DNA of 64,000 bases from Monocercomonoides exilis PA203 (lineage: Eukaryota > Protista > Preaxostyla). The notes beneath the pieces were generated by a model that was not told the origin of the DNA, searched no databases, and was given only the letters and a program-made list of their open reading frames with translations. This document shows positions 2,013 through 60,242 of the stretch, in pieces (position 1 is the stretch's first letter; every line of letters begins with the position of its first letter). The stretch covers positions 496,001-560,000 of the forward strand of contig LSRY02000049.1 of the NCBI GenBank assembly GCA_001643675.2, written 5' to 3'. The translations under genes and the position numbers were made by a program.

Positions 2013-5000
2013 TCATTGATTTGATCCAGAGCAAGATGCAAGGCGTCGAAGCTCAGAAACATTCACATTCGAATCTCCATCGTATGTGATCGCATCCGAA
2101 ACGGTGAATATCACAGCTCCAGCCGGAAAGTTCTCGAACAGCTCCCGCTTCATCCCAATCAGCGTCGGCCTGGCTTTCTTGTCTTCTGAAAGCGCTTCCA
2201 GGACCACTTCGTCATACGACGAGCTCGCCTTCGAGCAGTTCGGCCTCTCCCCATTCAGAATCTTCTGCCCCGCCACCACTGCCTCATACTCCCCAAACGG
2301 GATCTTCAGCGTCACACACTCCCACAGCATCATCCCAATCGAAAACACAACCGTCTTCTTCGTCGCATGCTTCGTTGTTCCATTCAGCAGCTCTGGCGCC
2401 TTCCACCTCATGCACTCCTTCCTGTTGTCTTCCTCATCCTCAAAGGCAGACGAGGGCAGTGAGTCTCTGTCATCATCATCACTTGTTGATGTGACAACAG
2501 TTGACGAAGAAATGGATGATGAATCAGAGCCGTCTGATAAAAGGTCTGAGTGCATCACAATGCAGATGACCATGTGTTCTGAGAAGAGAACAATGTGAGG
2601 ACTCAGATTGGAAAGTGACTGAAGCTTGTTTTCCATTTCATCAAATGAATGAAGAGCTCCATTCGCCACCCAGAACAGGATCTGTGCAGCTGTCTGCTCC
2701 CGCTCCTGCAGAGTGCCTATCGCCATCTCTTTTTTCTCATTCTTTCCATGAAGCAACATAAACAGTGAATCCCTCAAGTCAACAATCAATTTCTCATGGG
2801 GAGACGAGCAGGCCATTGCATCCACCAGATTCGACATTGATGAGGTTGTTGGACATAGATCCTCCCCTCGAACAAAAGTTGAATCAGAATCGGTCGTTGA
2901 AGTGGATGAGATGGATGGAGAAGGAGTTCTCTTTCTAATTTCTTCTTCTTCATCTTTCTCCAGAATCCATTGAGGGATCTTGTCTGAATCTCTTCCAAGG
3001 ATATATTCAGTCGATCCGCTCTCAGATAGAAGATGCTCTGATGATTCTGAATGCCCAAAGCTTTTCTCATACACCCTCTTCTTTATTCTCTCTTCATTCT
3101 TCTTCTCTGCTCTCCTCCACTGCTCCTCAGGAGACATCTCCATCGTCACCATTTCAAACGCCTTCGGATCTTTCTTCACAGTCTCATTCACAATCTCTTC
3201 TAATTCCCTTGTTCTTCTCTTTTGCTTTTTCCATCGAACAACAAACAGAATAAATCCAATGAGAACAATCAAAAACAAAACAGTTAATACAACAACAATA
3301 ATTGTCCATATTGACTTTCCTTTCTTTCCTCCTTCAACAATCCTTTCATCTCCATTAACCTTCGGCTCACTTTTATTTTTGATGATGAACGATTCTGTCG
3401 ATGAAGGAGAATCTGCTTTCCCAAACACAATGCATACGCTTACTTCTGTCTCTTCTCTCACTTTCTCCAGTTCTGAACATGAAATAATTGTTGATATTTC
3501 ATTCTCTGACACAAACCCTTCTTCTTCAACCCCCTTTCTCACAATCTCCTCTTCACCCCCATTTTTCATGCTCATCTTCACTGACAAATCACATGGCAAA
3601 AGCAGCTTCCCATGAATCATCAACTCCGCATTCCCATTTGGCAGATTAATATTTTTCACCTCTTCCAAAACAGGGATGAAATACGATGATCCTCTTTCTC
3701 CTGCTATCCCTCCCAATTCGCATCCCTCATCCAATATCCACAATGATGAGTTATCCTTCCATCCATCTCCCCCTTTCACACTCACAACATTCAACTCCCC
3801 ATTCCCTTCACAAATCACATTCCTTCGGGCTGATGGATATCCCTCAATCAATGGGTTGTTGTTCTCAAACTTTCCATTTTCAATCTTCACACTTCCTCCA
3901 CTCGCCCACAGCCCCCCTGCCTTGCTCTGCATAATCATTGTTTCTTTCATCTCCACTTTGCTGTTTTCAACATCAACCAATGACCCATTCCATTTGCACA
4001 ATTCCTCATTTTTTCTTTCAACTTCCTCATTGATAATCTCATCTTCTTTTTCTCCATCAAACACACATGCCTCAACCTTCACTTCCTTGGATCGTCTTAT
4101 CTGCATCATGCTTCCCTTGTCAACTGAATTCACACATTTTCCAAATGAGCAATTCAGCACACTCTCCTCTTGTTCAGCATCTTCCATTGAAACAACACAT
4201 CTTTCTGACAACAGAGTTACATTCTCAATCATCATGATCTTCATCTCCACCTTCGCTTTTCCTCCAACACTCGCAACATCTTCCTCACATTTGATATTCA
4301 AAATACTCGTTTCAAGCAACATCACATTTGACTCTTCATGGAATGAAAGAACTGATAATATTGAATTCAAATCCCTGAATGTTGTTTCTGATATCTTCAG
4401 TTCTCCTTTTTCAATACTCACAACAGAACTGTTCAGCTTCATATCAACCGCTGTTGCTGAGAAGAAGAATTCACATTTTTGGATCTCCATCGACCCGTTT
4501 GTCACTTTCATGATGCAGCTGTGAGTTGCCTCAAACGAATCTTCAAACTGAAATGAGCACCTCTCCACTGAACATTCATTCACAAACTCCATGATGCAAT
4601 CCTTCTCACCTGACTTCTCAATCTTGGAATTCAATTTCACAATTGCCTGTGTCTTTTTGAATGAACTCACAACAAGGTCTCCAATCACACACTCCTTCCT
4701 CACAGTCCCTTCTCCATCAATCAGAATCGCATTCATCACCCCTTCCTGGATGTGCCCAACTCCACAGTTGATGCTGGAACAAGAGTTGCTCTGTGCCCCA
4801 CACCCCCTCCCATCTGTCCCTCTCCTACTCACAAACACCTGTGCCAAATAATAGAATGTGATCAGCGGAATCAGATCAACATCTTCCTCGCTCTCAATAT
4901 TCCTCCCGCAGATAGAGTTGTTCGAGTTCAGTGACTCCTGATTGTAGTTCAAAATAAATAGTGTTTCGTTGATTTGATGAGCAATCGAGAGGCATCTGAC

Positions 5001-8000
5001 AAATATGTCTTTTCCAGAAAATGCATCATTCATCACGAACAGCATGTTCACAATCTTGAAATTCAGAGGTGGAATCTGAGTTTCATCATCATAATTGGCA
5101 TTTGGATCAGACCCATCGATAAACAGCCCTCCACCTCGCCCAGTTTCACTCGAACATTTGCAAGTCGAAAATGAGCTCCCATTCACTTTCAACACTGATT
5201 CTTCACTCTTCAGCACCACTTTCACTCCTCCTCCTTCATCACTCAAACTGCTCTTGCAACTCGACATCGAACACTCATCTATCACACATTCCACTCCATG
5301 CTCAAATGATCCCACTTCAATACCACTTGCTCCATTCCCTTCATTTGTGATGTTCGCAAATGAACACCCAACAACCCTCAAAATTGGTTTGTTACCATTT
5401 GAATGAGTGCTTTTATCTCCGCTCATCAGGTTTCCCTCTTCTATCATCGAAATCAGGCTTCTTTCTTTCACACTTGCAAACGAAATGTTCACATTCTGAA
5501 GTGTCACCTCAGCTGCACTTGGGCTGAAGGCGATCAATCCTTTCAACTCTGAAATCAAGCTCAACGAACACCTCTCAATCACAACATCCCCTCCATTCAC
5601 TCTCATCACACAATATCCTGCTGTCTCTGTCAACCCGGCCAATGAACCAAATGAGCAATCAGAAACAGACAATAAGGTGTTTGCTCCAGAGGATTCAATA
5701 AATACTTCATGCTGTGTGGTCATGGTTAGCTTGGTGAATGACACATTCACAATTGACAAACTCACATTCGAGGATATCATTGAACAACCATCCAAATCAT
5801 TCTCATCTTCATCACTTATCGTTACAGCTGTCCCTTTCTTTGTTCCTTCAATCACCACTTTTGATGAATCTGAAATTGATGATGAAAATAATATAGAGTG
5901 GCTCAGCAACCCTGATACCACAATGGCAATATGTGTTTCCCCTTCTCCAAGTGTTGGATATCTCAGTGAAATCAAATGATCAATTGATGAGCATGGTGCT
6001 TCAGAATATCCACACCCACTGAAGTCTCCTCCTTTCTCTTTCGACACAAACCCATCCCCACTCCAGTTCCTCCACAAATACACAACCAATGGAATCACAT
6101 ATCCCTCCTCTCCTGTTGTCTTCCTCTCCCACCCACACAGTTCATCCAATGATCCCAGCTCCTCTGAACTCATCTCCCATTTGAAATGCTCCTTGTTCAC
6201 AATCTCACTCAGATCCCATCCCGAAACAAACACATTCTTCCCTTTCCAGGCATAGCATCCCTCAAATATCATTCCTTCAAGAACAAATGATCCCATTTGC
6301 TCGGACAATTTCACAAACGTCCCTCCTCCCACTCCTCTTCCTCCATCCTCTCTATCTTCTGTTGGCACTTCACACCCAGACAAATTCACCTTTTTCATTT
6401 CCAAACTCCCTCCCTTTCCCACTGATATCTTCATTCCTCCCCCTTTCATCCCACTCCCCCCTGAACACACTGATGACAAATTGCATCCTTCAATATTCAC
6501 ACCCCCTCCTTCCTTCATCTCCACATTCAAACATCCCCCTCCAATTCCACCTGTCACTTCCATTCCACTCATTCTGCTGTCATTCATCTCCAATTCAACT
6601 CCGTTTGTGATCTCTATTGGTGATTTCTCATTCATTCTCACTCCCAATTCCATCACAAATCCATTAGCAATCAGCCTTCCTCCCTCAATACAAATCACAT
6701 TGAATCCAATCAATTCATCGTCTCCAAATGAGATTGAACAGCTGGTCATTGTGATGGTCGATGAGGAGGAGGAGTGGATAAATGCACGTCTCCTCCCATT
6801 CATTTGTTCATTCAACACAAATGCCAATTTTCCAATCTCAAATGATTTTGAACATTCAATAAGGTTGTTTTGGGAAAACGATCCTTCATCTCTCACCGAC
6901 ACTCTCATCCCCTCTTCTTTCCCTGAAACACAAACCTCAAATGAAACAACTTTCATTTCACTGTTTATCCATGATTCTGAAACAACTTCAATTTCATTCA
7001 CAGTGCTGCTCGCTCTCTTGTTCACACAATAGTCAATCGTCACACACCCAAACTCCTCAAACCCACAATAATCATGATCCAGTGCCCTCTCTCCTTTCCC
7101 GTCAACTCTCAATTTTGAGCCAATTGAACACAAATACACAAACAGTGGAATCACTTCCTCTTCTCTCCCATCCTCACTCCCACACAACTTCAGAATATCT
7201 GACGGAATCACACTTGACTCAAAAAACTCAAATGAACTCCCATTCACTTTCGACTCCAACAACACTCCTCTTCCACAATCAACAAACACATCCTTCCCAT
7301 TTTCAGCTTCAATATTTCCTCCAAACAAATCCTGTGTTCCTGATTCAATCTTCAATGAACCATCCCTGCTCTCCATCACAATCATCATCCCTCCCCCTCT
7401 TCCTTCACTTCCACCTGAACTCTCCCTTGAACCCTTCGCCTCACACCCATCAATCACACAACCCCCATTCACAACAACACTCCCTTCCCCCTTCACAACA
7501 ACACTCATCCCTCCTCCCCTTCCACAAACACACCTGCACCCCTTCACAACACACGATTCAATCACAATCATCCCATTCTTCTCCTCATCCCCTTCTGCTC
7601 CAACCACCCCACTCACCCATCCTCCATCTCCTCTTCTCTTCTCAATGTTGTTCACCTCACATCCACAAACCACAACTGATTCCACCCCTTCACCAAACTC
7701 GACCAGTGAATGTTCTCCAAATCTCAAGGTCTCTGTGATCACCAATCCCTCCACTTTCACTTTTCACCCAATCACATTCACAAAACAATATCCAATGGAA
7801 TTCTCTGATGAACAAACAACAGAACAGTCAGTGAGCGTGAGGAGTGTGGAGTTGGATGTGATCAGAGATGATGATGATGCACCAGACAGAGCAGATGGAA
7901 TACTGAACTTGATGTTTCTCATTGAACACTTGCTCTGAACATCAATCAGACATGACGACTCAAAATTCTCTGGTGCTTTCACCCCAACCTCCACCCCTTT

Positions 8001-11000
8001 TCTCGCACAGGAAATCTCCCATTCATTGCCATCTGTCATTCCAACTGCCTCACAAAGCTCAAATCCTGAATCCAATTCGATCTTCTTGTTTGTGTCTGCA
8101 TATCTCACCTGCGCTGCATGCGTGATGGTGGCACACGGATAATAGTCAAATCCACAGAACCACGAGTCATATCCACCCAGCCCATCCTTCCCCTTCCCCA
8201 CATGTGCTGCATCTGGATATGAATCCAAATACACATTCAGTGGGAACAGCCCCATCGTTGTGTCGCTCCGATCATATCCCACCAGCTCATTGTAATTTGA
8301 ATCGTCATGTTGGACATTCAGCTTTTCTCTTGTTATTCCCCAATTCACCGAATTGCTCCCATTCACAAACACATAATTCCCCCCCAATGAAGCAGAACAC
8401 CCTGAAAAGTCAACTGACACAATCGAGAAGTCAATTGAGTTGTCAGCCAAATACAACATCATCCCTCCTCCATATTTCCAACTTGTGCATCTCTTGATTG
8501 TTGTTGTTGCTTCAACCTGGAGCTTGCTTGTATCTGTTTCCAACTCAACATTGATCCCTCCTCCACTGCCATCCTCACACTTGCAATCTTCGATTGTCAC
8601 ATTCTGAACAACAAATGTCTCCCCTTCTGCCACACTCTTTGCCACAGCCACTCCATCTCCTTCAGTCAACTTCACATTCTTCACAGACAAGTTCACAATC
8701 ATGCTTTCTCCAGATACTGTGGATGACAAAAACAGGGCAGATGAGGAGGAAGAAGAAGAAGACAAATCAGGTTCAGAGAACAATGATTTTGAGACATTCA
8801 TATTTATGATCTCCACATCGGTCATCAACAGCTGCGACAGCGGCACCACAAACACTGACGACGATATCACATAGTTTCCTGAAGAAATACTCGTGGTGAT
8901 CACAACATCTTCCAATGAGAGTGACCCACCTCCATCAGACACCACAACCACACTCGGCGAAGGATTTGCACTTGAGTTGCAATCAACCTTCATGTGCAAA
9001 AAACCAAGATAACCTGTTGTCACACTGAACAGTGTTCCTACCGATGAAAGTGTCCCTGTTCCAATCGAACTTGCTTCCCTTCCCTTCCCAATGACTGAAA
9101 TCTTCTTTATCCCAATCTCAATCGTTGTTGTCTCGCTTGTGTGATTCCCGTCCATCAGTGTGATTGTTAAGCAAATCTGTACCTCACACATCTCAAGCGC
9201 CTTCTTCACTGTCAGACATGGGCATGACTCGTTTGCCCCACATTGCTCATTTGAGTCATTTCCATTCACAGAAACAAAAACCGTCTTTTCTATCAGCCAA
9301 TCCTTCTTTTCTGTTTGTTTATATGACCAGTTGTTATCAGTGTAATTATATCCGTAGCACACTCTATGTTCATTTGCGTTTGTTGTGAAGCATTCAAAGA
9401 ACGGATTTCCAGAAGAATGAAAAAGATCATAGTGCACATAAAACATTACATCATGCCCATATGGAGTGGATGTTGTTCTGCATATGCATTCATGAAAGAA
9501 GAGGAAATAACAATAAATGCCATCACTTGGAGCTATTGATTTGTCTGGATACATCCACAATGCCCCTCCACATGAAAATGCTGAGCATGAAAAAAACTGA
9601 ATGCTTCTCATTTTGAATTGTTCAGGTGCGTATCTGCAAAAAAGACCTCCTCCATGATTTGTTGAAATTGAGCATAAGGTGAAACGGCAGTCAAACACGC
9701 ACACACTCTCCCCTTCTCCTTTTTCATTTCCAATGCGATCTGTTCCTGAAAACTGAAATAATTCAAGATAAAGTCCTCCTCCCCAGCTGATTGCCTTGCA
9801 GTTCTCAAAGTTACATAAGCTGATCCGAACGCACGATGAAATCGAATAAGCATACAATCCTCCTCCATATTGATTTTGAGCATTGCAAGAGCTGAATGAG
9901 TTGTTTTCAATTTTAATCGACTTGATTGAACGGCACATGATCCCGCCTCCGCGACTGAATGCAAAACAATTGTTAAACAAACAATGTGAAACAGAGAGCT
10001 CTCCGTTTCCAAGATTGTGCATGTAGATGGCACCTCCACTTGACACTCCATCTTCATATGAATCACTTTTTCCAGTTGTCTTCGATCCGTTCCATTCACA
10101 CCAAGTGAATGAATTCGCTCCATTATCTGTTTCGTTCCGTCTTCCTGGAGTCAACTTTCCATCTGCATTTCCTTCACATACAACATTTCTTGTCCGACAA
10201 CACCCAACGAATGAGGTGTTTGAGGCTATTAAGGAAGCCAAGGGGTCATTGAGGGAATGAACAATACCTCCATCATATGCATCACAAACTGATGAAAATG
10301 AGCAGCTGCTCATAAAATATGTGGTTTGGTTTGATGTAATTGTTGGAGATGGACAATCTGAAGGTGCTGTTGAGATGTTGAAAAACGTCAAATGAGAGAG
10401 AGATGCAAGATGAATGGAGGGTGATGAAAGGAATGGAGCAGCTGATAGACAAAACGAAGAAAAGCTGGATTTCGTCAAGGAAATAATGGCAGATTTCGAT
10501 TCGCCGTTTTCGATCTGTTTGGAAGTGAAAAGAGGAGGAAATGCACTCAAACCTTCATCTTTTGACCTCAGAGAAATGTTCACAAATGACCCAAAACTCC
10601 CGATCAGTTCTATCGGTGGAGAATGTTTCTCAACAAAAAGGATGCACTCTTTCATTAAAACAATGCATAGACTATTCGCAGTGAGTGTCTTTTTTGCTCC
10701 TTTTTCTCTCATCAGCAGGCCCATTTCCATGATTGACGAATTGAAACAATTAAACCACCCCTCTATTTCACAAGACTGACAACAATTTGGCTTCATCAAA
10801 ATTCCATTTTCTCTTCCATATTCTTTATTATACTTTTCTTCATCTTTGTGATAACTTCTTCCACCAATTTCACTCAACTTCATTTCCTCAATTGGTCTTC
10901 TTCCATCTTCTTCATATTCAATCAGCTCGTCATTTGAAGAATTTTTGTTTGTTTGAAGCAGATTTCCATCAACTTGAATCACTTTTTCTTCTTTCACATT

Positions 11001-11099
11001 TTCTCCATTCCAACTTGAATTATCTTTTGTGAAAGCAGTATTAATACAATGCAAACAAATACTCAAAACAATCATCCCCATTCCTGACAGTGTTCTCAT
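2013..11099 (-). CDS. Giant single-pass receptor-like protein A (signal peptide, beta-helix-like ectodomain with 5 Cys-capped modules, TM, degenerate TK/TKL-like pseudokinase); one internal in-frame TGA at 7764-7766 (possible pseudogene)
   Basis: ORFs 7764..11099 and 2013..7760 are in the same frame (..FVNVIG*KVKVEGL..), 3029 codons in total. Hydrophobic N-terminus MRTLSGMGMIVLSICLHCINTA. Repeated GGG(M/L/I), FxxC and VxVS..G.D...CG....PC.(S/T)I motifs. TM IWTIIVVVLTVLFLIVLIGFILFVV followed by RWKKQKRR. Kinase C-lobe motifs RWKAPE and VFSIGMMLWECVTLKIPF. Confidence 0.85.
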
Positions 11100-16236: not shown

Positions 16237-16237
<1 letters not shown>

Positions 16238-16271: not shown

Positions 16272-16272
<1 letters not shown>

Positions 16273-16448: not shown

Positions 16449-19400
16449 GCGTATCACAAATCCGGGAAACGTGGGACAAATTTTTATTATAATGTATCAA
16501 TGATCGAAAAAATATGTATTAAAACTTTTCAAATAAACAAAAGGAGAAAATGTCTCGCTTGTGATGTCATCGTGCAATTGAACTGCAGAAAGTGATTTGA
16601 AATTGGTTTGCTGTTGTTTCTAATGAAATGGGTGATTATTTATGAAATCATAACTTTTTTCGGTGTGTGCATAATTTAGAAAATTTTATGAATTCGAAAC
16701 AAAAATTTTTGTTGAAATGTTTTGTTCATCCAATTGAATCAAAAGACATTGTTTGATTTGAAAGAAAGATAGTGATGATTTTTGTTGCAGAATTTCTTTT
16801 CTGTGTTCATTGATATTAATTCAAAAAAGAAATTTTTTTACCGAAATTTTTCAACGAAAAAATATGATTTCAAAAATAATTACCCAAATATCCAAATCAA
16901 ATATTACTCTGATATTAATATTGCCTGAATATCATATTCAATCAAACTTTTTTTTTCAAGCGTGTGTTATTGGGTCAAAAACAATTGAATAATGTTATTG
17001 TCAATACGCGTTTGAGCGAATAAAAGCGTTTGAAAGTGTGAAACCTGTTTTGTTTTTCTATGAAAACGAAATGTTTCATTCACAAATAAATACCTCATTT
17101 ATTAACATATCAACAATCCTCATTGTCAAAAACAAAAAGTGAACGTGCAATATAGAAAAGTTCATTGTTATATTGTAGTATCGCTAAAAATAAGGAAATT
17201 ATTATGGCAAATTATCGATTCCATTTAATATCCAAAAAATACTTTTATAATCAAAGTTGGATTAACATTTTGATCGTTGAATATTTTGAACTTAATATTT
17301 TTTTAACAGCAAGATAGTTGTTTGAAAGTAAAATGCTCAAATGGGCAAATTTCGAGTGATGTGTAAAAATATTAAACATTTTGGAAGAAGAAGTTAGCAT
17401 TGATTAGTTTCTTTATAACTTTTTTTTTCAATTTGAATGTGATTTTTATTTTTTTTCTCTGGAATAGTGTCTTTCATCCTAGGATAATTAAAAAAAGATG
17501 AATATATAGAATAAAACAGATTCAGAGATTTAGAATGTGTGGTTTTCAAAATATCGAACAAATCAAGTGAAATTGAAAAAAAAAATGATCGAAAAATTCA
17601 GATACAAAGAATCACTATTTCATAAATCACAGTTATTGCTTTTTCGAGCTAAAAAACTGTTGTTTCAGTCATCATAAAAAAAATAAACAAACATCCTCTT
17701 GTATTTTCATTAATAAGATCCAAACTGGAGTTGAACTATTGAAGAAGGATTCCACATATTATTTGGGCATTTCCTTGTTAATTTCATATCTTTATAATGT
17801 CTTGTTTTCATTATCAAAAAGATTTCTGAATAATTTATTTTTGTTTAGTGAGAATATTACGATAACCATTATTGAAAATTACAAATAATCCCCAGATGCC
17901 CGATAAATGAAAGAAATGCAAAAATGGATGAAGTTGAATTGATGTTGATGGAAGACGATCATGATTTTATTGATGAAAAGGATATGAAATGAATCAATAC
18001 GGATGTGATTTCAATCATGTTTGAAGAATGCGAGGGCAATAGAGAAGCAATTATGAAAAAAGCACTTGATCTTGTCGAAAAAAGAGTGATAACAAAAAAA
18101 GAATTATTCGACTCAGGAATCATTCATAAAAGCAGCTTTTACAGAGCACTTTCAGCGAAATCAAAAGGAAGAGATGTATGCTCTGTTGGACGACCTCCTT
18201 TATTAAACAAACAAAACAAATCAGTTGTGAAAGAATCAATAAAGGAGGAAGTCATACAAGATGCATATCCTTGCGCAAAGCAAGTTAGAGAGATGGTACA
18301 TTGTTATATTTTTTATTGTTTTGTTATTTTTTCTTTCACTGTATTTTCAGGCTCAATTGACAATATCTGAAAGTTCAGGGAAACCAATGGATGAAATACT
18401 AATATCAAGGACATGGCCCTATAGATTTTTGAATGATCAATCAGATTTGTTTTTCATTCACCCAATTCAACTTCCAGCTGCTCGAGCAGCACACTCAACA
18501 AAAGAATGTCTTGCTCCATGGTTCGAAAAAGTTAAATCATTATATAATGAGTTCAGATTTCAACCTGAACTAATTTTTAATCTTGATGAAGTATATTTAT
18601 CTGTTTCTGATCTCAGGCCTGTCAAAGTGGTAAACACAGAAGATGCACGTGTGCCCTTTGTTCATGAACCAGTCTTGCCTCCATCAATTTCTTCTCTCTT
18701 CCTTATTTCAGCGGATGGTGTGAGGTATCCGGTTGTTACAAAAATAAAAGCAAAAAAGCTTCCCATTGAATTTAAAAAAGCAAGCGAGCCCCAGTTGAGA
18801 TTTGTTACTGATGAAACTTGCGCAATGACGAAAGAAAGCTTTCAGATGATATTTGACAGAGTAATTATACCCTCCATTGTTCACAGAAGAATTATAATAA
18901 ATGAAAAGAACTCGCACTGTTTTCTGTTTATGGATTCTCTTGCAGCCCATTTGTCCCCTCAGATTATTCAACAATCAAAAGTTCATCACATTGACTTATG
19001 CTTCCCACCATCTCACACTTCACATCTTGTCCAGCCATTGGATCTTAATGTCAACGCCACATTTAAAAATTCGCTGAGAACAATGAATTATGAAACGCCT
19101 GATCCTTCTGCGAGTGAAAAAAGAAAATCATTTCTAGACAAATTTATTAATTCATTACACGCAGCATTCAAGCCTTCAACAATAAAAGCTTCATTCAGAG
19201 ATTCAGGAATATGGCCATTCAATCCAGAAATTGTGTTATCAAAAGTGCCTGAGAAAAGACCAGAATGGGTAAAAGTTTCAGAAAAAATTATGGATCCTGC
19301 AAAGCCTTTTTTTTTCTGGAAAAATGTTTATATCGTCTCGTCCAACTGATCACATTGATGAAGATGTTCACCCTTATTTTTCTTGAGAAATTTTTTTTAT

Positions 19401-25161: not shown

Positions 25162-25714
25162 CAAAAATGGAGACGATGTGCAAGATGAAGCTTTCGCGAA
25201 TGATTTTCTCGAACTTTTCGATTCTAAAAATCATTTATAGTATTAATTCAGATTATAACAAAAATTCATTGTAAACGTACAAAATAAAGATTAAAATTGA
25301 AAGAAAATATTAACGAATTAAAAACTGTACCTTGAAATCTTTTGGAAAATTCACATTCTGCATTTTCTATTTTAGAACTAGATAAATACTTTTAGCAAAG
25401 TTTGAGATAATATTATGATAGAAAAATCATGATAAAAGAGAAAAATAAAACTTCATTAAAAATTGAATGAAACAAGTGTTTTAAATTCACACCTCATGCG
25501 AAAATAAAATTTCTGTTACAATGGTCATGACGACATTTTAAAAAAAGAAATTAACAGCACTTAATCGAAAAATTAAACAAGTTCACAAATATATTAAGGT
25601 TTGTCTGCGAAATATTTTGAAGACGTTTATTTTGTGATTGTTTAAAAGATTCTTGCTTCTTATCGAAAAGCTTTTGACAATTTATACAAATTTTATTCTT
25701 CATAATTAACAGCT

Positions 25715-46354: not shown

Positions 46355-46356
<2 letters not shown>

Positions 46357-46387
<31 letters not shown>
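46357..46387. repeat. Poly(T) tract, 31 nt
   Basis: Directly visible. Confidence 0.95.
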
Positions 46388-46388
<1 letters not shown>

Positions 46389-46740: not shown

Positions 46741-46756
46741 AATTATAATTATTATA

Positions 46757-46816
<60 letters not shown>

Positions 46817-46905
46817 ATTATTATAGTTATAATAATTATTATAGTTATTATAATAATTATTATTATTATAATTAACATAATTATTATAATTATTATAATT
46901 ATTAT
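46741..46905. repeat. (ATT)n/(AATTAT)n compound microsatellite
   Basis: Directly visible. Confidence 0.95.
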
Positions 46906-47771: not shown

Positions 47772-50700
47772 ATGATCACATTTTGCCTTGTTGTCCAAAT
47801 TGGCTTTGTCTTTTCGGAACAAACAAAACACCTCAACTTGTTTCTTTCTCAGAATGAAAATGGAAGTGATAGGGCATTTGGAATTGGAATGATGCAATCC
47901 CAAAATGGCAACAGACAATCCCCACTGTCTGAAGACAACCGTTCTCGCATCCAATCCAACATCTGCACTTTCCCTCCAAACACTCACCAGGTCATTTTTG
48001 AGTCAATCAATTCCACTCTCTGTTTGAGAGATGTTCAAGTTTCGGTGATTGAAAACGCACACATTGCCCAGCTTGATGAGCTCTCGATGTGTTCATTTTG
48101 TGCTTGTGTGATTGATGTTTTGCATTTGGATGTTCCTCTGTTCGATGTGAAGGGTGGGCTGCTGGAGATGAAGAACTGCTCGCTGCAGCCATTTGGCTTG
48201 GCACGTTGGCAGATGGGATCGCTGTGCTCGTGTGAAGAAGGAAGTTGCCTGTTTCTGGGTCGCACTTCATTTTCATCGTTTTGTGTGGCAGGCAGCAAGC
48301 CGCTGATTGGGTCGTGCAGATGCGAATGGGTGAGGCTTGACAACTGCCATTTCAGAAACATCACATGGGAAGGGTGGCGTGATGAGCAAGGGACAAGGAG
48401 AGAGGGTGGGGGCAAAAGCACAACTGCTTGTGGATGCAGTTTTGAAGAGGTGTGGAACCCGATCAATGGAGGCATTCTGGCAGACTTCAATGCTGGTGGC
48501 TCGACAAGTGTTTTCAACTCGACATTCTTCAGATGCAAACAGAAATACAGCGAAGGAAAAATGGAAAGGATCGAAGGTAATGACACAGTGAGCTTTGAAA
48601 ATGTCGAATGGAACTCAATACAAACAGATGGGAATGAAGGTGCAATATTTATAAATAAAGTCAATACAGTGTCAATTATTTCATGTTATTTTTATCAATG
48701 TTCTGGCAGCCATGGAGGTGGCACCTATATCACCTCCTGCAAGAATATCAAAATTGAAAACACAAATTTTGAAAAATGTGAAACAACACCTTATTTGGGT
48801 GGTGGACTTTTTATATATTTTTTGACCTCAAATTCAGTTCTTTCCATTTCAAAATGTTCATTTTCAAATTGTGAAGCAAGATCGTGCGGAGGAGGTATTT
48901 GTTTGTGTAAGTATATTCCAAATTCAGAAATTATTGACTGTCGCTTTGAAGCATGCACATCACAAAGTGGGGGAGGTGGATTGATGATTGGAGAAGACAT
49001 CAATGTGAAAATCAAAGAAACGTTATTTTGTGCTTGTTCCACAAAGACAAACATTGGAGGAGGAGGTTTGATCCTTCGAAATTATCAATATTCAATAACA
49101 TTCTGTTCAGCAAGTTTTGCATTTTGTTTCTTTGAGAGCAATTCAGGAAACAATGGGGATTTGAGTGTGAGAGGATGCGATGTGTATGGGTCACCAGATT
49201 GGAATGGGTTTGTGAAAGAGGGAGACTTCAGATACTGTGTGTCTGTGAGTGAGGGAGCAGTGAAGCTGTATCTGTCAGATCTGGGAGACAAGAGCAAGTG
49301 GCTGGAGCCGTGCCACAACCCGATTGTGGTGAGCAGCAGCACAGGGACAGACCATGTGACATGTGGGCATGAGAGGGATGAAGGGTCATATGCGAAGTGC
49401 AGGACAATAGGGTTCACGATTGGGGTGGTGAGAGGAGACGGCGAGACAGTGGGGAATGTGTCTGTCGAAGAAGGGGAGTATTATGAGGAGGGGATGAGGA
49501 TCGAAGGGAAGAGGCTGAGGATTGGGAGTGTGTCAGCAGAGAGGAAAGGAGTGGTGCACACGAGGGACTGCAGGGGGTGGCTGTTCTGGGTTGGGGATGG
49601 GTGGCTGGGGCTGCTGGATCTGGCGATTGTGCATGATGGGGCAGAGGGGTCGAGCAGTGGAGTGTGCTGTGTGAGCGGGGCCAGTGGGCAGCTGGAAGTG
49701 AGTGGATGCGAGATCAGTGGGGGTGTGGCAGGAAGAGTGGCGAAGGAGTGTGTGATGGAGATCTCGGAAGGGGAGGCGGTGCTGAGGAACAGCTCGATGA
49801 GAGATCTGCAGATGGACGGGAAATGCGCAGTGTGGGTGAACCGTGCGAGGCAGATGAGGATGGAGGAGGTGAACATGACGTCGATGGGGAGGGTGTCAGG
49901 GAGCGGGGCGGTGGTGGAAGGGGTGCTGTCTGGGGGTGGGGAGATGGGTGTGTCGGGGGTTGTGGTGGAAGACTGCAGCGCCATGTGTGGGAATGGAGGC
50001 TGGATGAGTGTGGAGGTGGAGGAAGGGAGCAGACTTGTGGTTGGGGAGGGAGAAGCACCAACAAGGCTGACCAGATGCCGAGCAGAGAGAGGGGATGGGA
50101 GTGAGTGCGCAAACACTGGCACAGATGCAGGCACAGGGCGAGGAGGAGGGATCCACATGTGTGTGGCAGGCGTGAAGGCAGAATATGGGTTCAAGAATGT
50201 GGAGTTTGTGGGGAATGAAGCAGCACATGGAAAGGATGTGTTTGTGGTGTCGCCGTTGCTGGGGGAGTGTGTGATGCGAGAGCGATTTGGATTCTTCAGT
50301 GTGGCGAATCCGTTTGGAGAGGAGTGTGCAGAAGGGGTTGACACGAGGTGGGGGTCGGTGGTGATCCCGCTGGTGTATTATCTGAAGGAGCGAGAGGGGA
50401 AGGTGAGTGTGGGGAACAATGGGCATGATGTGCCGGCGTGTGGGTTTTACGAGTATGAGTGCCTGAGTGTGGGATACTCGAAGAGGCAGGCGAAGAGCAG
50501 GTGGGATGTGAGGGTGAAAGGGCGATACGACTTTGTTGAGAGCGTGAGGGTTGCGCCAGGGGAGGAGCTGATGATTGGGGGAGTGGATGGTGAGGAGTGT
50601 GGGATGGTGATGAAAGGGGACGGGAGCGGGGACAATGGGATGGTTGAAGTGAGTGGGACAGGAGTGGTGGCGATGGTGGAGCTGGTGATGGAAGAGGGGC

Positions 50701-53700
50701 TGAAGGGGGACGAGTGGTGTGTGTTCCATGTGGAGGGGAGTGGAGATCTGTCGGTGGATGAGTGCAGAGTGTGTGGAGATGGGTCAGTGGAGAAGGTGGG
50801 GTATGGGGTGTTCTGTGTGAGTGGAGGGGGTGTGACAGTGACGAATGTGGTGCTGGACGGGCTGGGGTTCACAGAGCGAGGGTTTGTGGAGGTGAGTGGG
50901 GAGACAGCGGGAGGGACGATTGTGGGGCTGAATGTGACGGGTGGGGCAGGGAGCAGAAAGGGGGTGATTGTGAGCAAAGGGGCGAAGAAGATGGAGGTGA
51001 AGAAGATGAATGCGAGCGGGGTGTGTGCGAGGGAAGGGAGCGGGGCAGTGATGGAAGCAGTTGTGAAGGATGGGTGCAGGCTGACAGTGGATGGGGGTGT
51101 GTTGGAAGGGGTGTGTGAGAAAGGGGATGGGGGAGGGATGATGGTGGTGATGGAAGGCGGGGGCGTGTGGAGGTGGGGAAGAGCGAGAGTGTGGGTTTTG
51201 AGGGGTGCAGTGCACAGAGGAAGGACGGGGCAGGAGGGCATGGAGGAGGGATGATGATGAGAATAGAAGGGTCGGATGGAGACTTCAGGCTGGAGAGACT
51301 GAGGTTCAGCGGGTGCCAGGCGAGTGTTGGGGGAAAGAATGTGTTTGTGTGCGGGGCAGACTTTTCGCAGGAGATTGAAAGAGCAAAGTTTGGGTTTGTA
51401 GAATCGTATGAGAACACAGAGGAGATTGGGGGTTATGAAGACGGGGACGAGACATGGGTGGTTCCGGTTGTTCTGTACTTGCGGGATGCCCCAGAGGAAA
51501 TCCGGGTGGGGGCGAGAGGAGCAGGGACTTTGGCCGATGTGGGTATGAAGGGTTTGAGTGCCAGTCAGTGGACTATGGGGTGGGGCTGTGGGGCAGAGGA
51601 GCAGGTGTGAATTGCGTGGTGACATCGCCTTCGTGCGTGAAAGGAGAGATGGTTCTGGAAGAAGGAGAATACAGAATACGAGGAATGGGAGTGGGCAGTG
51701 AGGTGGAAATGATGCAGAGCGAGGGTGCTGGGGCAGAGGGCACTGTGGAGAGCAGCGCACAAGTGACAATCGAAAAAGTGGTGTTTGTGGCTCCAGCGCA
51801 GAAAAAGGCGAAGGATGCGCTGATCCACACGACTGGTGGGGAGATCAACATCCGGTTGTGCTCGGTGGGTGTCTGCAGTGGCGGGAGCAGCGAGCAGAGC
51901 AGAGAGCTGAAGCACACATTCCTGTGCATCTCGGGTGGCCGGCTGGTGCTGGAGGAGTTCGAGCTCACAGCCATTGCCGCAGCATCGGTGCCAGTTGTTG
52001 TTGTTGAGGATTCTGGATGTGGGACGATTGAGCAGTGTCTGTTCAGTGGGGTGGGCAAGGCACATGCTGATGGGCTGATATTGAATGGGGCACAGGGGAT
52101 GTGCGAAGTGAGCAACACGACGATGTCGGGGCTGTCCCTTTCAGAGGGGTGCGGGATATGTGACCGTGGGGGGAAAAACATGGTTGTGAGGAATTGCACA
52201 ATGAGCGAGGTGACAGCCACAAAGGGGAACGGATGCTGTGTGCGAGGTGTGGTGTCGAGTGGCTGTGCGCTGGAGATGTTTGATGTGCAGATGGTGGGGT
52301 GCTGGACAGAGCGTGGGAATGGTGGAGGAATACATGTGGAAATGGAGGGAGACGGCAGTGTGCAAGTTGGGAAAGTGGGGAAAGTGGGGATGAAGACATT
52401 GTTTGAAGGGTGCTGTGCAAGGGATGGGAATGAGATTGGGGGATATGGAGGCGGGGTGGCGCTGGTCAGCAAGGGGAACCTGTCGTCGTTTGTTGTTGCC
52501 GATGTTGTGTTTGGGGTGAACGAAAAGGCAAACCACGCATCGAAAGGCGGGGACAATGTGTTTGTCCGGGGAGAGAATCTGTCGCGGCTGATAACAGACG
52601 AGTCGATGCAGTTTGGGTTTGACCGAGAGACGAAGGCCACGTTCAGGGAACTGGAAGGGGAGGAGGTGGGGGAGGGAGGGGAGGTGAGCGCTTTTGTGCC
52701 GCTGGCTGTGCTTGTGGTGGAGTTCAGAGGAAGTGTGCATGTGGGGGGAGAGAGCGGAGTGGATTATCGGATATGCGGGCTGGAGGTGTATCCATGCTCG
52801 ACAATCAGGTATGGGTGCGCGCTGAGGTTTGGGGCAGCACAGGCATCGGTGAGGCTGATGCCCACGTTTGTCTTCAACAGCAAGCTCACGCTGGCTGAGC
52901 GGAGCATCGAGTTTGAAGCAGCTGTGGCGGAAGAGGCCATCCAGATAGACACATCTGGGATTGGGGCAGAGGGGTGGTTGGTCGAGACGAGCAGCGCCAT
53001 ATCATTCTCGCGAATACACTTCTCGGTAAGTTCTTCAGGTGCACGTTGCTCGAGTGCGGGGCTGAACCAGCACACTGGGGTTGCAGCAGAAAGAGCGGAA
53101 CACGAAGGGATGCCCAACACAGGTGGCCACAAATGTGTGTTTGTGTGTGCGGGGTCTTCGCTGACAATATGCAGCTGCTCGGTACAGATGAAAACGGCAG
53201 ATGCAGTGCTGGATGCACAGCTGATCAGATGTGTTGGGGGCACACTGAGCATCAGCGGGCTGAGCATGAGTTCGATGACCACAAGAGAGCCGCTTGTGGT
53301 GATTGACGGAGATGAGTGTGCAGGGGTGATGGAGGGGCTGGAGATATATGGATCGAAAAACGAAGGAGAAGGAGGAGGCAGCCTGGTGGAGATAAAGCGC
53401 ACAAAGAAGATGGAGATGAAGCACTGGAGAATGAGCGGGTGTGTGCAGGAGGACAGCAGCGGGCTGAAGATAAGCGGAGGGATGCTGGTTGAGGTGTGGA
53501 ATGTGACGGTTGAGGAGCTGCAGAGGACGAGGGGGAATGGCGGGGTTGTGGTGTGCATGGTTGGGGAAGGGGAGACAAGGAGAATGCGGAACTGCACGTT
53601 CTGGAACAGCAGCTGCGAGGAAAGCGGGTCGAAGGGAGGCGGGGTGTGGGTGAAGACAAGCGGAAGGAGCACGATGATTTTTGAGAAGAACAAGGTGGGG

Positions 53701-56700
53701 TGGTGCAAGACGCCGGGAGGGAGTGGAGTTGGGGGAGGGGTGTATTTGTGGTTTGGAGGGCTGGAGGCGGTGTACTCGATGAAGGATTTGGAGTTCAGCG
53801 AGAACAGTGCGTACCAAGGGCGGGATGTGTATGTGGTGTGCGAAAAGCCGCGGCTGATGATGAATGCGATATACTGGAGCGGGACGGCGTCGAGCGAGGA
53901 GAGCAGCGAGGAGCAGAAGCGGCTGTGGGTGGTGGACAAGGAGCCTCACGAATATGTGAGCACAAGCCTGTTTGAGTACTTGTTTGCGAGTGTTGCAGAA
54001 ATTGTGTTTGTGAACAAGGACGGGTGGAGCGAAAGCGAATGCGGGTTCGAGGACACGCCGTGCAGCAGTGTCGAAACGGGGCTTGGGCAGATGGAAGCAG
54101 CGCAGTCGATCATCCACATCAAGAAGGAGGCGCCGCTGAACGGGACAGTGAACAGAGGGAGCGAGCCGCTGACGATCCGAGGGAACAGCGAGAAGGGGAA
54201 GATGAGCGTTGGGAGCGGAGCGCACCTGGAGGTGACAGAGGGTGTGGCACGAACAACGCTGATGCTGTCGAATGTTGTTGTTGCCCTTGGGGAAGGGCTG
54301 GCAGAGGCAGAATTGGTGGAGCTGAGGTGTGGAATGGCTGTGGTGATTGACAGCGAGATTGTGGATGAGAGCGCAGCAGGGCATGGAGGCGGGTGGAGGA
54401 TCGCGTCGATTCATGGGGGAGAGCTGGATATGAGCAGGGTGAGGATCGGGAAGATGGATGTGATTGGAGAAGGGGAATTGTTTTTGGTGTGCGGAGGGTC
54501 GCTGAAGATGGAGGACAGCTGTGCGAATGGGGTGTGTGGGAGAGGGAATGGGATGATTGCTGGGAAGGAAGGAAGGATTGTGGAGATGTTGAATGTGAGC
54601 ATTGCCGAATGCGATTTTGAGAACGGGCATGTTGCGACAATTTGGAGCGGGATTGGGAATGCAACGATATCAAACTGCACATTCACAGATTGCTCGTCGA
54701 TGTCGGATGGTGCATGTGTGAGCGGAAAGATAGGAGGGGACATGGAGTTTTGTGTTGAAGAGACGGAAATGAGCGGATGCCGATGCACAAAGGAAGGAGA
54801 AGGAAAAGGGGGTGGGATGTTGATGGACATGAGGAGCGGGCGGGTGCAGAAGTATCTGGTGCGGGATGTCAGTTTTGAGGGAAACGATGCGTGCTTTGGG
54901 AGAAATGTGTTTGTGGAGTGCTTGAGCCTGAACGAGAGTGTCACAGCAGACCGAATGGTGTTGAGGTGGGGCTCAGCGGAAGATGATGGGAACGGATATG
55001 TTGGGGCAGACAGCACATTTGAGCTGATCACACTGGAGCTGTTTCTGGTCAGATACGACGGCGGTGTGGTTGCTGTGTCGAATGCAGGATACGACATGAT
55101 TGGGTGTGGAGGGGAGCAGCATCCGTGTTTTTCGTTCTGGCAAGGGTATCGGAACTTGGGAGCAGATTATGAAGAGCGGAAGATGGCTGTTGAGAACGGG
55201 TGCGAGATTGCAGGCGAGTTTGATGTTTCGGCGATGACAGTGGAATCAGCCAGTGCAGAAGCAGAGGCTGCCTTATCGTTTTCGGAGCAGTGGGCAGACG
55301 GCCAGGTGGAATGGGTTCTGGGAACAAGCAGCAAAACTGTTCTGAGCCTGTTGCACTTGTGTGTGCCACAATCGCTAAGTGAGCCCCACAGAACACTGAT
55401 ATGCTGCACCGCACCATCTGGCGCATTGAACATCAGCCATTGCTCGTTTTCTGCAGAGCATGCAAAGCGCATATCGTTTTCGCTGATCACAGTGAACGGC
55501 GGGCACATGACGATGAGCGACTGCACAATGGAGCACGTGACCGGAGCAGCACCGCCGATTGTTTCGTGTGGCGGCACAGCAATATCGAATTGCACAATAA
55601 AGGAGATTAAGTGCAGCGAGAGCAAGGAAGGAGGGGCTGTGCATGCGGTTTTGAAAGGAGACTGGAGACTTGTGATGAGCGAGTGCAAGATGAGCAGTTG
55701 CAGCTGCTCGGTGGAGGAAGGAAAAGGGGGTGGACTGTTTGTGGATGGAAGCGAATCGGAGGATGATGAGCCGTTTTTGTTCACAGATGTTGAAGTGTCC
55801 CTGAATGCTGCACACATGGGTGTGAATGCGTTTGTTGTTGCAAGAGACCTGAACAGCTCGATAACGAGAGCAACGTTTGGGTTTAAGAGCAGCAGAGGGG
55901 AAGAAGAAGGGAACGACTTTGTGGGAAGGGATGGGGTGTTTGGGGAGACGGATCTGTATCGGTTTGTGAGGGAGTACAGGAGCACAGTGATTCACATCTC
56001 GTCAGTTGGGGGATTCGATGTGATGCGGTGTGGGAGCGCAGCAGAGCCGTGCAGCACATTCTGGATGGGGATGCAGAAGTTGGAGAAGGAGACGAAAATG
56101 AGATCGGTGAGGGTGCAGGGAGAGCTGAGGATTGCAGATGGATTTGATCTGACGAACTGCAGCGTCGAATGCGAGGGCAGCGCGGCAGGGGAAGATGCAG
56201 CATGCAACATGGTATTTGACATGGAGGGAGACAGCGAGTGGGATGGTGTCATGTGCAACAAGGGAGAGCTGGTGCTTGATGGAATATGCATGAGTGTGAA
56301 GAAGATGGGCGAGGAAAGGGAAGCAAATGTGGTTGTGAACGAGCAAGGCAGCCTTTGGATTCGCAGATGCAAGATGACTTCGGCGAGCGCGGGAGAAGGC
56401 CAGCACAAGAGCCGGTTCAACTATGTGGCGATGCGAGAGGGGACACTGAATGTGGCAGGGCTCGAGGTGTGTGAAGTGAAGTTCGAAGGGTGTGTTGTGC
56501 AGGTTGGCGGTGGGTGTGATTGTGTTCTGGAGAATGTTGTTGTGAACTCGATTGGGATGCAAAGTGGGTGTGTGCTCTGTGCAGTTGATGGGGCAGGAGG
56601 AAGGGATGGCATGAACAGCAAGATAGGGGTGAGAGTGAACGGATCGAAAGTGTCGTCGGTGGGGGCAGAGGGAGAGAAAAGCAGTGTGGTGTGGTGTGGA

Positions 56701-59700
56701 GGGCAGGGGGTGTGGAGTGTGGAGGTATATGAAAGTGTGTTTGAGCTGTGCAAAGCAAGCGGTTCGCAAAACGGAGGGGCAGTGCTGTTTGGGCTGAACG
56801 AAGAAGGGAGGCTGACGATAAGGGACAGCACGCTGCTTCAGTGCAGCTGCAGCCTGGACAGCGGGAGAGGCGGTGGCGTGTGCATCAGAACGAAGAACCA
56901 CGGGGATCTTCCGTTTTTGTTTTCGCGGGTGGTGTTCAAGGGCAATGCAGCGCATGTGGGGAACGATGTGTTTATCGAGTGCTATCGGATCGACAAGCAG
57001 ATCAACGAGAGCCAGTTCAAGATGGATGTGCAGGAAGGGGTGTACAACCGGATCAACGCGATCTACGGGATCGACACAGTGAGCACGAGCCCGGTGGATT
57101 TGGTGTCGCTGATTACTGTGCACTACTCTTCGACTGTGGTTGTGTCGTCGAGCAGCGGCAAAGGGGCAAACACAAGGCAGTGTGGCGCAGCAGAGCTGCC
57201 ATGCCGTTCGCTGGACTATGGGCTGGGCCACTTGTCAGGGGGCATGTTCTTGACGGCTGTTGTGGACGAAGAAAGTGCAGCAGGTGGGGAATGCGACCTG
57301 AGGGATGTGGAGCTGAAGTCCAGGTGGGAGACGCGTTCGACGATATCGTTTGACAGCATCGCAACACAAACGCGCGAGCATGTGCTCAGCGTCGATGGGG
57401 GAGTGGGGTGAAGCTCATCCTGTTTTCGTATCCTGTGCCATTCCCGTCGGCACACGAAACCCTGATGCGTATGGAAACGGGGACTGTGTCTTTGGTGTTG
57501 TGCATTTTTGAGTCGAGCAGTGGTATCTCAGAGGGGAGATGCATGACTTTGATGGAGTGCGAAAATACGAGATGCTCTTTTGATCAATGCAAGATAAGAA
57601 ACACAAGGGCGCAAAAGCTGATTGCATGCCGGAACAGCTCGCTGAATGTGTCGCATCTTGCTGTGCAAAACGCAGACATCGAAGCAGATGGGATAAGCGT
57701 GGCAGACGATGTTTCGATGATGCTGTTCAATTATTCGGCATCGCATGTGCGACTGAGAAGTGGATGCATGATGGTGATGGGCAGCCAGGTGCAAGGGCAA
57801 GGGCAAATACAAGGTGAGCAGAGCAATGGTGCAGATCACAACTTCTCGATCATTTTCTCGTCATTCAGCAACATTTCCAGTGCTGCCCACAAGCCGAGCA
57901 TTCTGTCCATATCAAACAGCAACAATTGCATCTGTGTGGACAACTGCTTGTTCGATTCATGTTCATCATCATCATTTGTTTCGGAAGTTTCTTCATCGGC
58001 TTCAAATATTGGAACAGTGATGTTATTTGTATCATGCACAAACATTGTGTGCTCGAGTTGTGTTGTTGATGGGGGTTGGGGCAACGAAACGCAGGGGAGC
58101 CCTCTTGATCAAGGGGAGGAGGTCTGCTGGTGGAATGGATCGCAGATTTGTGGGGTCAACAGCACAGTTGTGGTGAAGGACTCAACAATCTGCAACTCGG
58201 AGGCTGGGGCGCTGTCTGTCGCAGGGGGAAGCGCAAGGATCGAAAGAGGGGAGTTTTGGAACAACAAGGGGAGTTCTGCGAAATATGTGTCAGCTCGGCG
58301 GAATGTGATGTGCACAGAAGGTGGGAGAGTGGATGTGGTGAGTCTGAAAGGAGGAGATGGGTGGAAGGAAGATGACTCGCTGTGGATGGTGGGGAAGGGG
58401 TGCCAGATGGGAGGGCTTGCCTCGGAAAGGAAGTCGGCATTCTTCATCCCGCATCTGAGCGAGGTGGAAACAGAGGAGACAGAGGATGTGGGAGGCATGG
58501 TGAAGCTGAGGTTCAAGGGGTGGGTGCTGCTGCCGTGCTCCCTGGGGTTTGAGGTGGTGGGGGTGGTGGGGGATGTGGAGTATGTGGAGAAGCACATGTT
58601 TGAGGAAGAGGATTTCGAGAGCGAAAGGGAGGTGAGGCACTGGGCAGAAATGGAGAAGGTGGGATGGGGAGGAGAGGAGGCAGAGGTGAGGGTGAGCATT
58701 CTGTTTGGGAACACGTCTGCGCCGTCGCACACAGAGGCATTCATTTTGCAGAACAAGAGTGAGCCGAAAGGAAATGGAGACGAAAGGACTGTTGAAGGAG
58801 GAAATGGAAAGTTTTCTTCTTCAACCGTGATAATAATTATTTTGGTTGTAATTTTATTTATTGTTCTCATCGTCGCAATATCCTTTATTGTTCGTTGGAA
58901 AAAGCAAAAGAGAAGAACAAAAGAGCTTGAAGTGATTGTGGAAGACACAGTGAGGAAAGATCCGAAGGCGTTTGAAATGGTGACGATGGAGATGTCTCCT
59001 GAGGAGCAGTGGAGGAGAGCAGAGAGGGAGGCAGAGAAGAAGAATGAAGAGAGGATAAAGAAGAGAGTGTATGAAAAAAGTTTGGGACACTCAGAGTCAT
59101 CAGAGCATTTGTTGAGCGAGAGTGGCTCCACAGAATACATTTTGGGAAGAGATTCAGACAAGATCCCTCAATGGATGCTGGAGAAGGTTGATGAGGAAGA
59201 AGATGATATATCGAGGAAGAGAACACCATCGCCATCCATTTCATCCACTTCGACCACAGACACATCAGACACAGAATCCACATTTGTTCGTGGGGAAGAT
59301 TTGTGCCCAACCACATCGTCGATGTCAAATCTGGTGGATGCAATGGCCTGCTCATCTCCCCATGAGAAGCTGATTGTGGATCTGAGGGATTCGCTGTTCA
59401 TGCTTCTTCATGGAAAGAATGAGAAGAAAGAGATGGCAATCGGAACTCTCCAGGAGAGGGAGGTGACGGCTGCTCAGATCCTGTTCTGGGTGGCCAATCT
59501 TGCACTTCACTCGTTTGATGAAATGAACAATCCACTTCAGTCGCTGACAAATCTGAGTCCCCACATTGTGTTGTTCTCAGAACATATGGTCATCTGCATT
59601 GCGATGCACTCTGACTGCTCTTCTTCAGATTCTGATTCATCCTCCATCTCTTCGTCAACTGTTGTGACATCTGCCAGTGGTGATGATGATGATGACTCTC

Positions 59701-60242
59701 TTCCATCATCTGCATTTGAGGATGAGGAAGACAGCAAGAACGAGTGCATGAGGTGGAAGGCGCCAGAGCTGCTGAATGGAACAACGAAGCATGCGACGAA
59801 GAAAACGGTTGTGTTTTCTGTTGGGATGATGGTGTGGGAGTGTGTAACGCTGCAGATCCCGTTTGGGGAGTGTTCGGGAGAGGCAGCAGGGAGCATGATT
59901 GTGCGAGGAGAGAAGGTGGGGATGGGTGTTGCGAAGGGGTCGCGTGTGAGGGGAGTTGTGGGTGGGTGCCTGCGTTATGAGGCAGAGGATCGGATGACGC
60001 TGGGAGATGTGAAGCGGGAGCTGATCAAACTGTTCCCTCCGGGTGCGGCAGTGCTCACGATGACAGATGCGATCGGGTACGAAGAGGAGTCGGAGGAGGC
60101 CTGCAGTACCAGCTTGGCCATCATGGCCAGTGGAGCCAGCATGAACAGCACGACATGCATGACAAGCATGACAGATATTGGCAACAGATCCAGAGACATA
60201 AAGAAGCAAGAGGAAGTGAAGGATGAGGCGAATGGCAAATGA
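47772..60242 (+). CDS. Giant single-pass receptor-like protein B (~4,157 aa if repaired; 8 Cys-capped modules, TM, pseudokinase), split by three single-base frameshifts (~51165, ~51510, ~57407)
   Basis: ORFs 47772, 51167, 51454 and 57408 each step by -1 and read on as one paralogue of gene A. TM TVIIIILVVILFIVLIVAISFIV then RWKKQKRR. Cytoplasmic region near-identical to gene A. Confidence 0.85.

Follow-up and report, generated by a model that had tools for sequence, protein, structure and literature searches.

We analyzed a window of 64,000 nucleotides (contig region C46:496001-560000) within the 82.3-Mb nanopore assembly (LSRY02) of Monocercomonoides exilis, a mitochondrion-less gut flagellate that serves as a model for life without mitochondria. 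Two giant genes in this window, here called A and B, belong to the largest gene family of M. exilis, which has at least 883 copies. We consider it reasonably probable (roughly 60%) that the members of this family are single-pass surface proteins of 2,500 to 4,200 residues, in which a beta-helix rod is combined with a tail made of a catalytically dead half of a tyrosine-kinase-like (TKL) kinase, that this tail works by noncatalytic docking, and that gene B is intact and gene A carries a nonsense codon. The surface location and the receptor role of the family are predictions from the sequence.

The original prediction described A and B as a pair of giant receptors with one common layout, and translation of both genes (positions in Table 1) confirmed this layout. 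A hydrophobic N terminus, a long ectodomain, one membrane span, the basic stop-transfer sequence RWKKQKRR, an acidic Ser/Thr-rich juxtamembrane region, and kinase C-lobe motifs follow one another in the same order in A and B, and the membrane span is in each case a single hydrophobic stretch of 26 to 27 residues followed by basic residues. As for the signal peptides that had been proposed, hydrophobic N-terminal stretches are present in both proteins, as read by eye from the translation. The Cys content of the ectodomains is 4.3 to 4.6%, and each ectodomain has 40 N-glycosylation sequons. Two points of the prediction need correction. First, A and B form no special pair, being two of at least 883 copies; second, both reading frames are interrupted in the assembly, which had been overlooked.

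Judged by homology, the tail is a TKL-derived C-lobe remnant from helix αE onward, keeping the APE Glu, helices αF to αI, and the Arg of subdomain XI. A hidden Markov model profile, PF07714 (PK_Tyr_Ser-Thr), had been suggested as a check of this reading, and it matched the tails of A (32.5 bits) and B (29.1 bits) above its curated cutoff (23.1 bits), over profile positions 159 to 258 only; all 24 diverse tails compared with it were matched as well. When an alignment of 24 diverse dead tails was compared by hhalign with an alignment of 15 active kinase domains that the profile search had supplied, the two matched from helix αE to helix αI (99.8%, E = 3e-29). The residue mapping obtained in this way places L-S-N at HRD, Ser at the catalytic-loop Lys, Ile at the catalytic Asn, and M-H-S at DFG, and a conserved Ser/Asp/Glu insert occupies the position of the activation loop. 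All motifs that had been read as altered kinase signatures (DSLFMLLH, LSNLSPHIVL, RWKAPE, and TVVFSIG) were found in the sequence, and the equivalences proposed for the catalytic loop, DFG, APE, and helix αF are backed by this profile-profile alignment. Two residues that form a pair in kinases, the Glu of APE and the Arg of subdomain XI, are invariant in the tails. Besides, a profile of 23 tails matched solved TKL and tyrosine kinases in the PDB (TAK1, ZAK, ILK, TNNI3K, CTR1, and BTK) from APE to αI only, and protein language-model features of the tail point to kinase clusters.

The earlier observation that no N-lobe motif is visible also held, in that no GxGxxG loop, VAIK Lys, or αC Glu could be aligned. 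No Pfam or PDB alignment extended before profile position 150, template positions 1 to 110 had no partner in hhalign, and a greedy run added only a low-confidence extension over β4/β5. Since the glycine loop, the VAIK Lys, the αC Glu, the catalytic loop, and DFG are all lost or replaced, every residue required for canonical phosphotransfer is gone.

The size of the family was estimated from an invariant 12-residue peptide of the tail, DLRDSLFMLLHG, which is encoded at 883 genomic places with wide variation at synonymous positions, whereas its reversed control gave 0 matches. A protein search of the organism's own genome returned 1359 candidates, and all 105 that were scored had E values below 1e-185. 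The tail contained no stop in 103 of these 105, and most of the scored copies lay in open frames of 2,500 to 4,200 residues. The best 120 database matches were all M. exilis proteins, named either "uncharacterized" or "putative protein tyrosine and serine/threonine kinase."

It had been envisaged that A and B might simply be decayed copies in a family that mostly retains HRD and DFG. On the contrary, the dead residues occurred in all 30 tails that we read in sequence (29 further loci, gene A's own and B). The ratio of nonsynonymous to synonymous substitution rates (dN/dS), calculated over 29 paralogues at a synonymous divergence (dS) of about 1, was 0.085 for the kinase remnant, 0.07 for the juxtamembrane region, 0.35 for the ectodomain stalk, and about 0.8 for the extreme C terminus. 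Thus, the dead domain is under strong purifying selection, a measurement that the original prediction had called for. Relatives outside M. exilis have the same character. An exhaustive profile search found a dead tail of like design in Blattamonas nauphoetae (BLNAU_17738), a complete protein of 1792 residues from run SRR13490893 combines a hydrophobic N terminus, beta-helix modules, one membrane span, and a dead tail, and the dead tail recurs in about a dozen short Joint Genome Institute (JGI) metagenome fragments. All of these outside relatives have the pattern PTTSS...VDxRDS...LxxLxP...RWxAPE...GERP, and HRD, DFG, and VAIK were found in none of them. Because the dead state is common to paralogues and relatives and dN/dS is low, these tails are not decayed copies of active kinases, and the conservation of the tail across paralogues and oxymonad genera argues for a noncatalytic function.

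The PF07714 search also revealed ordinary full-length active kinase domains elsewhere in the M. exilis genome. Complete, apparently active kinase domains lie in giant open frames of 4,000 to 6,900 residues at C52:244016, C23:935922, C47:332771, and C28:950606. We considered these four frames as possible active relatives of the family and rejected them, because beta-helix modules and membrane spans are absent from them.

A confident model and fold matches uphold the interpretation of the ectodomain as beta-helices. Self-comparison of A revealed a period of about 360 residues. From family members, 387 modules were collected and reduced to 153 at less than 55% mutual identity, of which 63 were aligned with residues 1300 to 1720 of A. 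AlphaFold folded this stretch of A into an all-beta structure of short stacked strands with a predicted local distance difference test (pLDDT) score of 92.7 and a predicted template modeling (TM) score of 0.90. In VIA-align, the best match was the PL6 alginate lyase 5gkd (Z 22.5 over 259 residues; root mean square deviation, 2.9), and PL6 alginate lyases, polygalacturonases, phage tailspikes, and the adhesins PfbA, SRRP, and Vag8 were matched at Z 22.5 to 16 over 235 to 300 residues. Clusters of Beta_helix (PF13229), NosD, and Chlam_PMP were matched in the ESM Atlas at TM 0.53 to 0.65. Foldseek against the PDB gave no row at E ≤ 0.001 with the module; the best row had an E value of 0.011, and the weak rows were all beta-helix proteins. 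At the sequence level, no Pfam (E up to 10) or NCBIfam model, including Beta_helix and Chlam_PMP, exceeded its cutoff for the ectodomain, and TIGR03804 matched below threshold in the head of B only (14.5 bits against a cutoff of 19.45). One module is accordingly modeled as a right-handed parallel beta-helix with three-stranded coils, and the other modules are homologous to it. In gene A, a head region is followed by four full modules and a partial one (about five or six in all), and gene B has about eight or nine. The modules are arranged in tandem, are rich in Cys, begin with a CG...PC cap, and contain GGG/GGAI-type turns and an FxxN-like motif. Their chain would form a rod tens of nanometers long.

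These features suggest how such a protein might act. The variable beta-helix rod would bind glycans or particles such as bacteria or mucus, and cytosolic partners, among them perhaps the active kinases encoded in the M. exilis genome, may be recruited to the constant tail, which would serve for docking in the manner of KIND, ILK, and HER3. Phosphorylation or binding is likely to take place at the conserved acidic Ser-rich insert and at the juxtamembrane motifs. A wider proposal, which we put forward only tentatively, is that these proteins form a new oxymonad receptor class of about 900 genes, in which recombination-shuffled beta-helix modules that bind glycans are set on a C-lobe-only docking module, derived from a TKL kinase independently of KIND, and that this class might supply a repertoire for the innate recognition of bacteria or host glycans.

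With regard to the possible mode of action of the tail, the nearest known parallel is the KIND domain, likewise a kinase-derived, C-lobe-only, noncatalytic protein-interaction module (PMC2064798, PMC5338823, PMC11231147). The resemblance is one of design, probably of independent origin, and is no sign that the tails are KIND domains. KIND occurs in cytosolic animal proteins that are not receptors, whereas the tails match PF07714 and have TAK1, ZAK, and ILK as their nearest solved structures; the KIND profile (PF16474) found a match in 1 of 24 tails at E = 0.078 and matched neither A nor B. Receptor and scaffold pseudokinases (ILK, HER3/ErbB3, ROR/RYK/PTK7, and plant receptor pseudokinases such as BIR2) also have kinase-like domains that dock without catalysis, and the receptors among them share the order of ectodomain, one membrane span, and dead kinase; besides, ILK is among the best PDB sequence matches of the tail. 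However, these proteins have a complete bilobal fold, whereas the M. exilis tails show no detectable N-lobe and carry an acidic Ser-rich insert, and their ectodomain is made of beta-helices.

Entamoeba histolytica, also an anaerobic gut protist, has an expanded receptor-kinase-like family of about 90 transmembrane kinases with Cys-rich CXXC-type ectodomains and complete kinase domains, some of which are predicted to be inactive and some of which are linked to phagocytosis. The M. exilis family differs from it in its copy number (at least 883), its beta-helix rods, and its half-kinase. With respect to the ectodomain, the modules resemble beta-helix surface proteins, such as chlamydial Pmp proteins, autotransporter passengers, Trichomonas Pmp-like proteins, tailspikes, and polysaccharide lyases, in their fold (Z 17 to 22), their GGG/GGAI turns, and the FxxN-like motif. 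Unlike these, the M. exilis modules are tandem, Cys-rich, and CG...PC-capped and are anchored by a eukaryotic membrane span, not by a beta-barrel.

Previous genome studies reported that protein tyrosine kinases are the largest family of M. exilis, with 320 of 332 in the tyrosine-kinase-like group (Karnkowska et al. 2019), and that these kinase genes overlap unclassified repeats (Treitli et al. 2021). The family is recorded there only as "protein tyrosine kinases" (PMC6759080, PMC8767320), and we found no paper describing its dead half-kinase or its beta-helix ectodomain. We equate the published "tyrosine kinase" family with the present one on the basis of NCBI names, Pfam hits, and the wording of the papers. 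If the family consists of nonenzymatic giant receptors, the published kinome count is misleading. At 7.5 to 12.5 kb each, the length suggested by the open frames, 883 copies would fill 8 to 13% of the genome, an estimate that is an upper bound because some copies are fragments, and one surface-protein family may account for much of the 35% "unclassified repeats." A half-kinase under strong selection, in hundreds of copies and across genera, is also a natural experiment on a lone kinase C-lobe.

Gene B belongs to a subfamily of six close copies. A 95.5%-identical copy lies just beyond the window at C46:561463-573938, inverted, with some 5.2 kb of spacer separating its tail end from that of B, and four further copies at 95 to 98% identity are located at C46:675k, C75:90k, C75:7k, and C30:2k. 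Between B and its paralogues, dS is higher in the tail (0.18 to 0.26) than in the ectodomain (0.08), and within three pairs of B-like copies the tails are identical. This suggests that tails and ectodomains have had separate histories through recombination or gene conversion.

The main rival to a docking receptor is a variant surface coat or adhesin family, comparable to the variant-specific surface proteins of Giardia or to the BspA and Pmp-like proteins of Trichomonas. In this case, the diverse ectodomains would provide surface variation or attachment, and the tail would act mainly in trafficking (sorting, anchoring, or turnover) and less in signaling. In favor of such a coat, the family comprises hundreds of copies whose ectodomains vary greatly while the tail stays constant, the greater divergence of the tail than of the ectodomain among the close paralogues of B suggests segment exchange, and the beta-helix adhesins named above are among the fold matches. 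Nevertheless, we regard this explanation as rather unlikely, since a tail of about 390 residues at a dN/dS of 0.07 to 0.085, with a kinase remnant kept across genera, far exceeds the known needs of a sorting signal.

The broken frames of A and B raise another possibility, namely, that both are pseudogenes and that much of the family is decaying repeat DNA. Apart from the nonsense codon in A and the three breaks in B, this could draw on the overlap of the kinase genes with unclassified repeats and on the state of the B subfamily, whose six copies are all interrupted in the assembly. B itself splits into three long open frames and a short fourth stretch. However, the breaks have a particular form: each B paralogue carries private frame-shifting indels, from 1 to more than 10 per copy, and nearly all are single-G changes in runs of G4 to G6; in-frame changes in multiples of three bases also occur and are few. 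The copy at C46:675k has a pair of changes, one G lost and one G gained, 187 bases apart. We read each of the six copies in alignment columns, with X at gaps, in place of a majority-consensus frame that had been misleading. Read in this way, all six have 4157 codons, and the only nonsense substitution is found in one copy, within its divergent 5' end. The subfamily has a dN/dS of 0.35 in the ectodomain and 0.09 to 0.2 in the tail. Taken together, private G-run indels, the near-absence of nonsense substitutions, and this dN/dS pattern fit nanopore error better than six independent decays.

We further compared the region 51441-57440 (6,000 letters, covering two of the three breaks) with contigs from one DNA run of 2016 and three RNA runs of 2024. 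The contigs had the extra G at both covered breaks, 51507 and 57404, and B subfamily sequence is present in the RNA libraries. B is probably intact as a gene, since its breaks look like homopolymer errors of the nanopore assembly. The presence of subfamily sequence in RNA libraries, long open frames in most scored copies, tails that are nearly all free of stops, strong purifying selection, and breaks that show the usual signature of nanopore error without a nonsense codon in the shared part of the subfamily together make the pseudogene explanation improbable. The private one-G indels look like a systematic homopolymer error in LSRY02 for G-rich multicopy genes, which suggests that G-rich family members are systematically frameshifted in this assembly, with effects on gene counts and pseudogene calls.

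Gene A presents a different case. Its tail is 100% identical to that of the NCBI protein MONOS_7619. The NCBI model comprises 2841 residues and begins at residue 124 of our translation; the 123 codons upstream of its start open with an in-frame ATG followed by a hydrophobic signal-like stretch. At the position of the TGA in A, five paralogues that are 95 to 98% identical over the surrounding 130 bases or so have GGA. The NCBI model excises residues 1050 to 1114 (window positions 7758-7952, 65 codons) as a GT..AG intron. We rejected an intron here, as the TGA replaces GGA in a conserved motif and the excised stretch is coding in paralogues; for the latter reason we believe that the gene predictor introduced the intron to get around the stop. 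An alternative genetic code was also rejected, given a single stop in 3028 codons. Gene A thus carries a nonsense codon, real or erroneous, and may be a recent pseudogene.

Several observations weigh against the reading of the family as docking receptors with an intact gene B. The contigs of the read test carry variants of B paralogues or match the copy at C46:675k, so that they cannot be assigned to B, and at 51507 the extra G is missing from some of the DNA depth. The TGA of A is a substitution and not a homopolymer-length error; NCBI and EukProt both list the gene model that omits 7758-7952, and if, as we assume, EukProt took its set from the older 454-based annotation, the stop predates the nanopore assembly. 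The beta-helix fold is common to enzymes, adhesins, and phage tailspikes and is uninformative on the ligand. Finally, structure prediction of the tail, another check suggested at the outset, gave helices and strands in C-lobe order at a pLDDT of 35, and this model, built from a shallow alignment of 23 tails that are 76 to 92% identical to that of A, is unusable; the C-lobe fold of the tail is predicted from homology instead.

It is highly improbable that the tail is still an enzyme, working by an unconventional mechanism or with an N-lobe supplied by another protein: some proteins once called pseudokinases did prove to be active, and the genome does contain N-lobe-only PF07714 matches, though these resemble exons of ordinary kinase genes, but the residues at issue (Asp, Lys, and Asn of the catalytic loop and Asp of DFG) belong to the half that is still present, and every member, even the distant ones, has other residues in their place, so that a borrowed N-lobe could not restore them.

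Table 1. Positions of genes A and B and of their parts in the window
Feature	Position	Strand	Evidence or remark
Gene A (NCBI MONOS_7619)	2013..11099	-	3028 codons including one in-frame TGA
A, hydrophobic N terminus, signal-peptide-like, residues 1-24	11028..11099	-	Read from translation
A, head region, residues 195-524, GGAIY/GGGLY turns	9528..10517	-	Partial match to beta-helix module profile
A, four full beta-helix modules, ~360-400 residues each	4731..9299	-	Residues 601-975, 956-1323, 1319-1719, 1718-2123
A, in-frame TGA, codon 1112, within conserved beta-helix module motif	7761..7763	-	Context att ggg TGA aaa
A, folded module, residues 1300-1720	5940..7202	-	Right-handed parallel beta-helix (AlphaFold model)
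A, partial fifth beta-helix module, residues 2084-2417, running into stalk	3849..4850	-	Module profile
A, membrane span, residues 2596-2621, then RWKKQKRR	3237..3314	-	Translation, hydrophobicity
A, juxtamembrane region: charged helix and nearly invariant Ser/acid-rich motifs	2877..3236	-	dN/dS 0.07
A, dead half-kinase, FVRGED... to ...TVSDAI, acidic Ser/Asp insert replacing activation loop	2079..2876	-	PF07714 positions 159-257; hhalign
Gene B	47772..60242	+	4157 codons when three one-G-short runs are read through with X
B, ~8 (eight or nine) beta-helix modules, codons 508-3431	49293..58060	+	Module profile
B, break 1, G5 run versus G6 in 5/5 close paralogues	51158	+	Paralogue alignment; outside read-contig interval
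B, break 2, G5 run versus G6 in 5/5 close paralogues	51507	+	Paralogue alignment; extra G in DNA and RNA contigs bearing paralogue variants
B, break 3, G4 run versus G5 in 3/5 paralogues	57404	+	Extra G in every contig aligned, indistinguishable from copy C46:675k
B, membrane span, codons 3682-3708, then RWKKQKRR	58812..58892	+	Translation, hydrophobicity
B, whole cytoplasmic tail	58956..60239	+	77% identical to that of A
B, dead half-kinase	59280..60100	+	PF07714 match; alignment to tail of A

The module profile matched the four full modules of A at 2e-47 to 9e-146, and the head region of A had no match in Pfam or NCBIfam. Between A and B, the long open frames at 22798-25164, 34088-36079, 36573-38339, and 38973-43307 gave no Pfam match and contain no beta-helix module. 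A 935-residue open frame at 27169-29976 (+) matches the FIMAH domain (28.6 bits; cutoff, 24.8), and a 362-residue open frame at 18261-19349 (+), in an AT-rich stretch between the two genes, has a DDE_1 (pogo-type) transposase domain (E = 4e-12).

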